Virus record (IMG/VR): IMGVR_UViG_3300027896_005002
Location: 124,001 to 188,000 of that record
Length of the DNA: 64,000 nt
Reading direction: 5' to 3' (one strand)
Part shown: positions 833-34,626 of the stretch, piece after piece
How the letters are laid out: the number at the start of each line of letters is the position of its first letter
How positions within the stretch are numbered: position 1 is the first letter of the stretch
Position numbers and translations under genes: made by a program
The notes under the pieces: model-generated
What the model was told of the DNA's origin: nothing
Database searches by the model: none
The model's input: the letters and a program-made list of their open reading frames with translations, nothing else

Positions 833-1055
833 TATTCTAGAAAGGCAAATAAATGAGCACACTCAAAATAGGCATCAAAGTCAAAAAACTAAAATTCTGG
901 GTCTGGTTCGACAAAACCAACACTAAAGAAGATGATACAAAATTCGAAGGTACTAACGGCTGGGGTGGTGAAACTAGCAACATCACTATTGCTAAATTAA
1001 ACGTACATCCTCGAGACATCGAAGGAAGAATCGAAGCTGACGGATACCTCTGCTA

Positions 1056-1574
1056 ATGAATTTTCACGACATTATCCAAACTATCGATGATTGGGTCGGC
1101 GGCGGACTCCAAGGCCAACATGATGACGGTGATCCCACTCCAGATGACAAACTCCTCTTCTACAACACAATCAACAACATACCAATTAAATACAAACATG
1201 GCGGAATTCTATATAGAGGAATTTCTCTACCAAAATCTACTAACCTCAATAACCTCAAAATCTCTGAACTAATCTCATCTTGGTCCAAATCGCTACAAAT
1301 CGCACAAGAACACGCACTAAAAAATCCATACACCACTCTCCACATCATCTTCAAAAAATCTATCCACTCAAATCATATTCTCATCAACATCGAAGACTTC
1401 TACAAAGACTTACCATCTCTCACTAACATCATCCCTCCCAACATCAAACTAAGAATCAACCACTCTACTCGAGAACAAGAAATCATCTGCAAAAACATAT
1501 CCCTCTCTATCAATAACATCTACCTCATACATCACCACAACCAATGGCTATCACTACCCCAATTAAATGGATAA
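1056..1574 (+). CDS. ADP-ribosyltransferase-fold protein (R-S-E class)
   Basis: Ordered motifs LYRG, SSWS..lqiA and REQEII match the R / SxS / ExE signature of R-S-E ARTs. Confidence 0.65.
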   Translation: MNFHDIIQTIDDWVGGGLQGQHDDGDPTPDDKLLFYNTINNIPIKYKHGGILYRGISLPKSTNLNNLKISELISSWSKSLQIAQEHALKNPYTTLHIIFKKSIHSNHILINIEDFYKDLPSLTNIIPPNIKLRINHSTREQEIICKNISLSINNIYLIHHHNQWLSLPQLNG

Positions 1575-1804
1575 AATTGCAGAAAATATTAAAAGGTTCG
1601 AGGTTCAACTGGCCTCACTCAAAAATCATTTGCTAAAAAAATTGGCATAAGCGCTACTCATTTAACCTCATTGAAAAGAAAAAGAAAAGACCATCTTTAA
1701 AACTTATTTGCAAAATATCTAACAAATTCAATATTGATCCAGCTTTTATTGTTACACATACAGATAACTTGCAACTTCTTAGGAATTTATTAAAAAATCG
1801 TTAA
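1567..1804 (+). pseudogene. XRE-family HTH regulator, apparently frameshifted twice (or sequencing error)
   Basis: Joining three frames gives MDKIAENIKR/RGSTGLTQKSFAKKIGISATHL/LIEKKKKRPSLKLICKISNKFNIDPAF...; both breaks are single-base losses in short homopolymers. Confidence 0.65.
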
Positions 1805-32699: not shown

Positions 32700-34008
32700 T
32701 TTGTGCTCCTTGTTAAATTTTCATGTTATGGTATTAGATTAATTATATGCCACACTAAACGTAGTTATTACGATATCTGACTGTATCAGTCATTGAGAAA
32801 TGTCTTTGTGTGCTAGAAATTAATCTGTTATTTCAATTATAGCATCAGGGTCAAAGTAGAGAGTTTTGATGTGTGGGTTATAGACTGTGATGGCTAAGGG
32901 ACATTGTGGTAGAGCATTAGCTATGAATGCTTCTTCTATAGGTAGGTTGATGTAGTTTCCTGACGGGTCTTTTGTGAGTATTTTGTCCGTGAAAGTTTTT
33001 GATAGTAATTGGTTTAGCCATTTTTAATTTCCTTAGTTTTGTACTTCCTTAGTTAGATCATCATTAATTTTTACATTGACAGACACAATTTTGCCTTTAA
33101 TAAAAAGATGGACGCAGTCATCATATTTGCCATTAAAAATATCGTAAAGCACAGCTAATTGATATGCAGGTAGTTCTTGAACGGTGATTGGTTCCATTAA
33201 AGCTCTTTGCTCCAGAATCAATTGTTTTTTCATACTGCTATTTTTATAATCGTTGTTTATATTCTTGCGATTGCATCTTTTGTGTAGGTTATCTCATTGT
33301 TAGGGTCAGGGATTCCTCGGAAGCCGCGTTTGCCTGTGATTCCAAAATCTAAATGGTCTCTTAGGATAGATACTTTTTGTTCTAGGAGGTTTACTGTTTT
33401 GCAGATAGGGCTTCGTTGATGTGGTCTGGGTTTTTGATATTAGAAGCGTGGATTTTATCTTGAATCCAGTGTCGTACTTGGTGGTCGCCGTCACTGTGCA
33501 TTTCTCCGGTCTCAGGGTTTAGGTGTATTGTCGCGTGGATCCAAGGCGTCGGATATGATTCCGGCTGTGCGGTAGGATCCTGTGTTTTGGTAGCTTTTGA
33601 GCAGATGATTTCAAATGCCTTTCCCCATATGTATTTGCTCGTATCGGGATGGTATTCTCTGAATTTTTTTATAGCATCTGTGAGTTTCATTTTCTTGTTG
33701 CCTTTTTGTTTATAAGAACATAAATTCATTATTGAAGAAGAGATTCCTGTATAGAGGTCTCATAAGATGGATCATCGCCTGTTGGCGCATTATTTCAAGA
33801 TTGAGTTTTTGAAATCTGAGATTATCTAATTCTATTTGATTTTTTAATAATTATAGTTGAAATAATTCGTGTTTTAATTTAGAGATTTCTTCTTCTTTTG
33901 GTGATTTAGAGTTTGTCATAAGATATTCAACCTCTCCCTAGTCTCACTACCATTTCCTTTCAGAGAAGTCTGTCTAGAATTCATGTGGCCAAGTTTTTGA
34001 CGAGATCA

Positions 34009-34626
34009 TTATCTTTTAGCTGCGATGTTTAATACGATATCGACGATCATATGATCGTCCTGATATTTTTTGTAAAGTTTTTCTTTTAGGGATTTTTCCT
34101 CAGTAGAGTCGTCTTTTATTTTGGTATCCCGATTTAGGGCCGCGTCTGTGAAGTCACAGATAGAGATGATTGTCGAGATGTCTAATACTTTCTTAATCGT
34201 CGCCGGTGACCATTTTTCAGGAAAGACGTCCTGGTTGATTCCGTATCCGGCTTGGTAGAGATTGTGGTGAAGGCCCGCGCAGAGAGCTGTGAAGAGATGA
34301 ATTTTTCGTAGTGCTTTGAATCCTGCTTGGGCATGTGTTTTTATGTAAGCGTACTCTTCTTGGCTTATTTCGTGTCCGTCAAAGTAGTTAGCAGGTAGGA
34401 GTATTTTTCCGATGTCGTGGAATATTCCTGCAAAGAATACGGCTTTTTTATCTTTTTTTAGGATCTTTGCTGTCTGTTCTGCGAGGAGCGCGACACGTTC
34501 GACGTGACCTTTTGTGGACGTGTGATTGACTTCACATAGAGCTAAGAAGAATTTTGCCGTGTGGCATAATCCTCCTTTGGGGTTATATTTGTCGATCTTT
34601 TTTAGGACTTGTCGAGAGATGTTCAT
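34009..34626 (-). CDS. HD-GYP-like phosphohydrolase
   Basis: HVERVA, FHDIGK, H...GF, HHNLYQAGYG (GYP variant), ICD. Confidence 0.8.
   Translation of the reverse strand: MNISRQVLKKIDKYNPKGGLCHTAKFFLALCEVNHTSTKGHVERVALLAEQTAKILKKDKKAVFFAGIFHDIGKILLPANYFDGHEISQEEYAYIKTHAQAGFKALRKIHLFTALCAGLHHNLYQAGYGINQDVFPEKWSPATIKKVLDISTIISICDFTDAALNRDTKIKDDSTEEKSLKEKLYKKYQDDHMIVDIVLNIAAKR

Follow-up and report, generated by a model that had tools for sequence, protein, structure and literature searches.

Abrupt jumps in GC skew mark bacterial origins of replication, and in mammalian genomes a sawtooth of skew, the N-domain, runs between neighbouring origins. Strand asymmetry of the amplitude described here is otherwise known from vertebrate mitochondrial DNA (mtDNA), where a deamination gradient follows the time that the displaced strand spends single-stranded. 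In phages, oriF and oriG of T4 are R-loop origins, and the T7 promoters phiOL and phiOR flank the terminal repeat. Here we analyse two sharp skew switches in a 64,000-nucleotide (nt) stretch of a megaphage genome, positions 124,001 to 188,000 of IMG/VR record IMGVR_UViG_3300027896_005002, a linear record of 416,029 bp that is 77% complete by CheckV. This whole stretch is called the window, and coordinates refer to it unless given as genome positions. We find that the two switches are real mutational strand asymmetries centred on conserved non-coding zones (zone 1, 1805-2490; zone 2, 23015-23790), which bound a gene module of ~21 kb. In huge phages, GC skew over the whole genome has served to distinguish bidirectional from unidirectional replication (Al-Shayeb et al. 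2020, PMC7162821), and megaphage skew has so far been read only on that scale; what is new here is a local, paired, very strong and orientation-independent asymmetry. We found no description in the literature of paired local silent-site jumps of mitochondrial strength that bound a conserved module.

The first-pass annotation had picked out two places where the + strand changes from C-rich to G-rich, and its base counts in four 60-mers proved exact: 0 G and 20 C at 1321-1380 against 21 G and 6 C at 2221-2280, and 1 G and 17 C at 22621-22680 against 17 G and 5 C at 28921-28980. Raw skew in 1-kb windows moves from -0.39 (1001-2000) to +0.29 (2001-3000) at the first site and from -0.45 (22501-23500) to between +0.30 and +0.37 (28501-31000) at the second, and the cumulative G-C curve has its minimum at 2112, within a cluster of palindromes in zone 1. 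The second raw flip is blurred by a low-GC cassette at 23791-28246, whose silent sites already have the right-hand polarity (+0.34 to +0.51). All silent sites were referred to the + strand, and the 3 kb on each side of a point were compared. The resulting jumps, +1.60 at ~1750 and +1.21 at ~23750, are the two largest upward jumps in the 416 kb, and the third largest is +0.85. The backbone of the genome, in 1.5-kb bins, has a mean silent-site skew of -0.15 with a standard deviation of 0.25, and the local amplitude is 3-5 times that of the backbone.

Around and between the two zones, skew at silent sites rises and falls in a sawtooth. To the left of zone 1 it deepens from about -0.3 at genome 108 kb to -0.93 beside the zone, and this approach includes bins that hold - strand genes only (-0.35, -0.32 and -0.64). 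To the right it starts at +0.79, falls through 0 at ~12-13 kb and reaches -0.83 and -0.74 before zone 2, a drop that is roughly linear between the two jump points. Across zone 2 it rises to +0.5 in the low-GC cassette and to +0.84 beyond it, and it is back near 0 at about 38 kb. The fading of the bias with distance that had been described from the raw letters is thus also seen at silent sites, where it takes ~10-15 kb from the zones, and the gene at 13925-15121 is weakly skewed, as had been said. The affected region is larger than first stated, extending from about window -16000 to +38000 (about 55 kb).

The strongly skewed genes lie in four blocks, each of which points toward a zone. Block A is on the + strand and runs from genome 121,210 (window -2790) to 125.6 kb, its part in the window being 161-1574. 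It points toward zone 1, its + strand is C-rich and G-poor (C/(C+T) 0.25-0.82, G/(A+G) 0-0.07, silent-site skew -0.77 to -0.93), and its gene calls match the database calls. Block B (2491-6427, - strand) faces it across zone 1 with a G-rich + strand; its coding-strand C/(C+T) is 0.28-0.78, and the silent-site skew declines from +0.79 to +0.37 and then to +0.1, with the bias fading out by ~13,500. Block C (20526-23014, + strand) points toward zone 2 with a C-rich + strand (C/(C+T) 0.51-0.77, G/(A+G) 0-0.29), and its two skew values are the -0.83 and -0.74 given above. Block D (28393-37112, - strand) points toward zone 2 from the other side with a G-rich + strand; C/(C+T) reaches 0.92, the silent-site skew goes from +0.84 to +0.35 and ends at ~38 kb, and the bias is kept in a close strain (locus L005). 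In the middle segment between the zones (6457-20328), which contains the zero crossing, third-position GC is raised on both strands.

Together with genome 112-115 kb, these blocks hold ~43 genes whose coding strand is C-rich and G-poor. Their third positions average A 0.37, C 0.28, G 0.075 and T 0.28, compared with A 0.40, C 0.06, G 0.105 and T 0.44 in typical genes. The first-pass annotation had held that the bias is not simply codon usage, and the silent sites agree. In all four blocks C/(C+T) is ~0.4-0.6 at twofold pyrimidine sites, at fourfold sites and at the first position of the leucine codons CTA/TTA, where the backbone has 0.09-0.12 in each class, and intergenic spacers shift as well (0.42-0.49 inside the blocks vs 0.26 in the backbone). 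CNN codons are enriched in the skewed genes and GNN codons depleted. A translational codon-usage class, which would be codon-specific, limited to coding sequence and tied to orientation, was not found. On the G-rich strand near the zones, G/(A+G) climbs to 0.5-0.7, from 0.12, and C/(C+T) drops to 0.04-0.15. Third positions that differ between two strains, taken without polarity, comprise 94 C/T, 61 A/G, 27 A/C and 3 G/T differences.

Silent-site skew does not follow gene strand uniformly; it peaks at both zones. Genes of the - strand alone give -0.51, +0.59, +0.30 and -0.14 in successive segments (the last two at 7000-13600 and 16400-20000), so that genes on one strand switch sign by position. 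In the backbone, C/(C+T) and G/(A+G) of the + strand are 0.20 and 0.12 in + genes and 0.17 and 0.12 in - genes. We conclude that silent-site skew in this phage is set by strand and position and not by the direction of transcription. The gene for a major vault protein (MVP)-like protein in block D makes the same point for a single gene: its C/(C+T) and G/(A+G) are 0.71 and 0.12 in the window and 0.64 and 0.09 in the close strain, compared with 0.16 and 0.25 in a homologue from another huge-phage contig (L006, 53% identity) and 0.47 and 0.48 in a second homologue (L096, 57%). Homologues elsewhere thus have ordinary or balanced usage, and the genes do not carry the bias as a property of their own. 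The suggestion of a local strand-specific process therefore stands, at the level of nucleotides and centred on the two zones.

Aligned DnaB homologues led to related genomes in IMG/VR; scanning viral contigs with single proteins as queries (the MVP-like protein and DnaB) gave no relatives. The most informative relative is G005, a genome of 424 kb that is 98% complete and whose DnaB is 39% identical to that of the window phage. Third-position GC is raised in an island at 10-47 kb, and the two upward jumps that exceed all others in this genome, at ~12.4 and ~34.5 kb, are 22 kb apart. This island shows synteny with that of the window phage: three genes of the interior (homologues of the DnaJ/ligase-like gene at 7897-9036 and of the genes at 9717-9995 and 19563-19937) and a Na/Ca exchanger gene of the left flank are found in corresponding places. 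Inside the island, both strands have indices as high as the high values of the flanks. The right flank of G005 carries genes on both strands, and the skew is +0.46 in + genes (n=1343) and +0.45 in - genes (n=2353); Pfam confirms genes there in both orientations, a methyltransferase on + and a PilW-like protein on -. The genome-wide cumulative silent-site minimum of G005 is at 12,252, at the island, with a broad maximum at ~200-290 kb. A second relative, G001 (330 kb, 67% complete, DnaB 68% identical), flips at ~327.1 kb between two co-oriented + strand genes, from -0.59 on the side of UvdE to +0.41 on the side of YopX, both confirmed by Pfam. The switches of G005 and G001 carry iteron-like direct repeats. 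The first-pass annotation had placed the switches at non-coding zones of gene convergence; both zones in the window are indeed non-coding and convergent, and the G001 flip indicates that convergence is not essential. Because gene orientation has no bearing on the skew in these relatives, the results refute a cause in transcripts or in a codon-usage class. Judged by these comparisons, the architecture is old and conserved across the relatives.

The direction of the change suggests how it may have arisen. On each side of each zone, silent sites on the strand that leads away from the zone 5' to 3' have become richer in G and poorer in C, and those on its partner richer in C. The C-rich to G-rich polarity is, as had been pointed out, that of replication origins; since it fits forks that diverge from each zone, initiation zones are favoured. 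We infer, with a probability of about one half, that the two zones are origin-like initiation zones that leave a gradient of single-strand DNA damage. Unwinding or replication would begin at each zone and proceed outward in the two directions, with lagging-strand synthesis late or uncoupled along the first ~10-15 kb, and deamination (A to G and C to T) of the strand kept single-stranded for long would produce the gain of G and the loss of C. Between the zones the two directions would mix, giving the sawtooth and the intermediate or high indices of the interior. Resection of double-strand breaks was also considered and predicts the opposite sign, because the 3' tails on the left side would be the + strand.

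Compared with bacterial origins and N-domains, the locus shares the jump at a point on the + strand, a silent-site effect that is independent of orientation, a cumulative minimum at the island (in G005) and the roughly linear fall between the jumps. Unlike them, the asymmetry in the window greatly exceeds that of the backbone and is gone within 10-15 kb, the two jumps are only 21-22 kb apart, the genes run head-on to the jumps, and a DnaA-box cluster and an initiator were not found. The resemblance to vertebrate mtDNA lies in the kind of change. One strand has become richer in G and poorer in C in all silent-site classes, graded with distance; third positions of the skewed genes have far more C than G; the large change is A to G on one strand, where C was already depleted; and the genes beside the start point toward it. 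The setting is different, a phage genome of 0.4-0.5 Mb with a Pol III alpha subunit and a DnaB helicase, with an asymmetry that spans ~55 kb and is symmetric about two sites. As in T4 and T7, each zone has a promoter-like element beside an AT-rich stretch, and the same motif in the same orientation stands on both sides of a ~20-kb segment. The zones have no sequence similarity to oriF/oriG or phiOL/phiOR, and the promoter and R-loops are only putative here. To our knowledge, no local skew of this kind has been described for T4 or T7. More tentatively, the window phage and its relatives may represent a group of huge phages with a conserved ~21-22-kb module whose edges are paired initiation sites or terminal-repeat ends, with at least ~10-15 kb of strand-displacement-like handling of single-stranded DNA and a gradient of mitochondrial strength; we regard this broader proposal as possible rather than probable.

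From left to right, zone 1 contains an AT-rich stretch (~1860-1915), a motif common to both zones (1924-1938), a GC-rich core (1925-2060), four palindromes GAGATCTC (at 2086, 2101, 2113 and 2311), a 24-nt inverted repeat (2128-2151 / 2163-2186) and a C-poor, repeat-rich tail (2221-2490). In addition to the four exact palindromes there are two one-base variants, and the exact palindrome is absent from the rest of the 416 kb; scanning for pairs of GAGATCTC sites lacked specificity and gave more than 113 matches. The zone is ~99.4% identical in strain L009, which diverges by 1-7% elsewhere. Within the core, an element of ~37 nt (1978-2014) is perhaps conserved in G005 (P ~0.03 by our estimate), the only match among the large contigs scanned for it. 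Zone 1 had no Rfam match at the gathering threshold or at E<=1. Adjoining the zone on the left is a stretch identical in strain L009 (1564-1805, + strand) in which three-frame translation reveals a degraded gene for an XRE-type helix-turn-helix (HTH) protein with two frameshifts, one in an A-run. Another HTH protein beside zone 1, of 199 amino acids (aa) and with a sub-threshold DnaA_C-like match (24 bits), was considered as an initiator and rejected; its N-terminus is endonuclease VII/HNH-like, and from its sequence it looks like a homing endonuclease.

Zone 2 begins with a G-poor tail (23015-23460; 38 G vs 110 C), followed by an AT-rich stretch (~23440-23500), the shared motif (23498-23512) and a GC-rich core (~23600-23700). 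Rfam gave no match to it, even at E<=1, and RNA folds of the GC-rich cores of both zones were no better than those of shuffled sequence (z -0.29 and -0.48). The 15-nt shared motif occurs only twice in the genome, once per zone and in the same orientation, where we estimate ~0.03 occurrences by chance. Its - strand sequence resembles an extended -10 element, TG-n-TATA(C/T)T, and a scanner scored a promoter-like site of 10/12 at 23523-23496. As it is present only at the two zones, a role as a general phage promoter is ruled out. The cluster of short repeats beside the AT-rich stretch in zone 1, and the AT-rich stretch of zone 2, may be parts of an iteron-type origin, and protein binding to the repeats is conjectural. 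Self-BLAST also found a perfect 37-nt inverted repeat, with its left copy at 2845-2881 (- strand), within the first codons of the gene at 2491-2901, and its right copy at 23045-23081, in the G-poor tail of zone 2. The two copies have unrelated flanks, and in strain L009 the left one is missing 24 of its 37 nt. In two samples, JGI contigs break off at ~23675-23743, just before the low-GC cassette.

The module between the zones includes, by Pfam, a DnaJ/ligase-like gene (7897-9036), a GGACT (gamma-glutamyl cyclotransferase-like) gene (10138-10908), a phiEco32-like COOH-NH2 ligase (13925-15121), an RNA ligase (16411-17466) and a glutamine amidotransferase (18128-19087), and this cluster may serve base or peptide modification. 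Block C contains a GmrSD_N/ParB-like gene (20858-21391). The cassette between zone 2 and block D (23791-28246, - strand; GC 0.26-0.27) is variable between strains and, according to Pfam and PADLOC, encodes a radical SAM protein, a 78-aa open reading frame (ORF) and a helicase-like protein of 976 aa that weakly matches a PbeA/Cas3 type; the close strain L005 has a different gene beyond 28244. In block D, the 821-aa MVP-like protein (30234-32699, - strand; Pfam E=7e-21) has shoulder and repeat domains, and an HD-domain gene lies at 34009-34626 (- strand). More than 6,000 homologues of the MVP-like gene are found in bacterial and metagenomic data, and G005 has a more distant copy at 88.7-91.3 kb. 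The block A protein encoded at 1056-1574 has no relatives outside its own population.

Several observations weigh against initiation with prolonged single-strand exposure. Skews of +/-0.8-0.9 are far above ordinary fork asymmetry, and the additional assumption of long exposure is needed to explain them. DnaA boxes (TTATCCACA, at most one mismatch) number 32 against 22.6 expected and do not cluster in either zone, and no initiator gene (DnaA or Rep) was found adjoining the switches. The right-hand sides of both zones in the window hold - strand genes only, so the independence from orientation rests on the left sides and on the relatives. The G-rich - strand genes to the left of block A lie in the tail of the backbone variation, with a similar cluster at genome 80-85 kb. 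Some block edges (~20.5 kb and ~38 kb) are abrupt, and composition varies from one gene to the next, which suggests mosaic histories or gene turnover on top of any smooth gradient. Among the relatives, the smaller fragments G002-G004 (27-62% complete) have no clear island. Finally, sequencing depth changes at the edge of the module. The stretch is present in one public run, a DNA run that is probably the source sample, and in no RNA run. In the Logan contigs of this run, for which there is one k-mer depth figure per contig, a 20,223-bp contig spans exactly 2852-23074 between the 37-nt copies at a depth of 48.1, and those that follow on the right are at 22.8 and 21.9, ~2.1-fold lower, a comparison that covers the right boundary only.

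This depth step raises the alternative that the virion genome is linear, that the segment of ~20-21 kb is its long direct terminal repeat (DTR), which assembly collapsed to one copy, and that the flips are the physical genome ends. Replication or end processing would then run inward from the ends, and the collapsed map would mimic two origins. The difference in GC between the double-depth contig (0.38) and its neighbours (0.31-0.32) seems too small to explain a 2.1-fold change in depth; the similar 22-kb spacing in the distant G005, with homologous interior genes, agrees with a repeat, and the high indices on both strands of its interior fit a segment present at both ends. Very long DTRs occur in jumbo phages such as XacN1 (AP018399), whose DTR we take to be 65.9 kb with a boundary at 65,875, a figure that the record does not show. 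XacN1 is like the window phage in its segment of tens of kb with small accessory genes and intergenic bounds, matched here by a possible two-fold depth; it differs in having no skew jump at this assumed boundary, and the repeat of the window phage is putative. Because XacN1 lacks the jump there, a DTR alone does not make the pattern, and a strand-specific process starting at the ends would still be required. The depth reading itself, with one figure per contig from a single run, is of a kind that has been cautioned against, the switches lie 0.4-0.7 kb outside the double-depth segment, and the left 37-nt repeat is partly missing in strain L009. On balance we consider a DTR doubtful, although it is the strongest of the alternatives. 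A process other than replication that moves outward from the zones, either transcription with R-loops or strand-directed modification or repair, would draw on the extended -10-like motif found only in the zones and on the promoter-like site at zone 2. Outward RNAs would be G-rich, which would favour R-loops, and the amidoligase, amidotransferase and radical SAM enzymes of the interior belong to kinds proposed in nucleic-acid base modification. Gene direction, however, is without effect on silent-site skew in the backbone and in the right flank of G005, so ordinary transcription is not the driver; a range of ~10-15 kb is long for R-loops, and the genome-scale cumulative minimum at the G005 island fits replication better. 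We view such a process as unlikely.

The remaining alternatives place the cause in the genes themselves or in their history. Imported DNA from donors of another composition, drifting toward that of the phage, or inverted segments, could account for the GC of the island (0.35-0.47 vs 0.30), its hypervariability between strains, its mobile-type genes and the differing composition of adjacent genes. Inversion leaves the composition of the coding strand unchanged, however, and the backbone asymmetry (0.17-0.20 vs 0.12) is too weak to give +/-0.8 once flipped. Four imports would all have had to land in mirror symmetry around the conserved zones, the syntenic architecture is present in G005 with its distant DnaB, and a donor with a C3/G3 of ~4 is not known; a mosaic origin is therefore very unlikely. 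The lowest probability goes to a gene-class effect, in which four convergent operons, for example of early genes, were selected for C-rich, G-poor mRNAs or codons. Every strongly skewed gene in the window does point at a zone with a C-rich coding strand, the abrupt outer edges of blocks C and D could be operon starts, and the blocks consist of small ORFs without assigned function, like many early regions. Against this, the same shift is found in spacers and at silent sites read by different tRNAs, genes of one strand switch sign by position, G001 flips between co-oriented genes, the G005 flank is equally skewed in both orientations, and MVP homologues elsewhere are without the bias.

The genome that carries these zones has a GC content of 31%, 28 tRNA genes and 0 rRNA genes, and its source is a megaphage rather than a cellular chromosome. 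The - strand holds ~88% of the coding sequence of the 416-kb contig, and the cumulative raw skew of this contig falls almost monotonically over its whole length. The phage encodes replication genes, a DnaB helicase and a split Pol III alpha subunit; the latter, at genome 255,775-263,147 (loci L013 and L014), consists of a 993-aa ORF and a 616-aa ORF separated by ~2.5 kb of small ORFs. Terminase_6N had no match in the contig, and megablast of window 1-24000 against GenBank phages gave 0 matches. Both contig ends (genome 1-5,000 and 411,000-416,029; loci L004 and L003) fall within a single very large gene with internal repeats (a 1,614-aa ORF plus fragments, the repeats 64-77% identical), which probably explains why the assembly breaks there. 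In a separate observation, one gene N-terminus recurs in at least 14 copies across the genome with 72-92% nucleotide identity, at genome 58.9k, 91-96k, 180-182k, 210-218k, 288k and 371k, and also at the end of the contig of the second strain (L005, 14148-14525); it probably represents a mobile gene family that breaks assemblies. Farther along the window, 58561-63543 encodes an IS200/IS605-like transposase (phrog_506), a CCA-adding-enzyme-like nucleotidyltransferase and a tRNA-His guanylyltransferase. At genome 112,975-115,312 (locus L001, 8975-11312) the phage carries a cell-type ribose-phosphate pyrophosphokinase gene and a Na/Ca exchanger gene; as a lead to the host the former gave best cellular matches of only 40-46% identity, in Omnitrophota, Armatimonadota and Myxococcota.

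Megaphage replication is unstudied because almost none of these phages can be grown, and the asymmetry keeps its position and spacing in G005 despite a replicative helicase of only 39% identity. Should the zones prove to be initiation sites or termini, they would be clonable candidates for origin or packaging assays, and silent-site skew jumps would offer a way to locate origins or termini in uncultured megaphages from sequence alone. The locus would also be an example from outside organelles of a single-strand damage gradient that reshapes codon and amino-acid usage. Composition-based calls of foreign islands and host predictions from codon usage would be misleading in such regions, and phages of this kind would keep accessory genes head-on in the most mutable part of their genomes.

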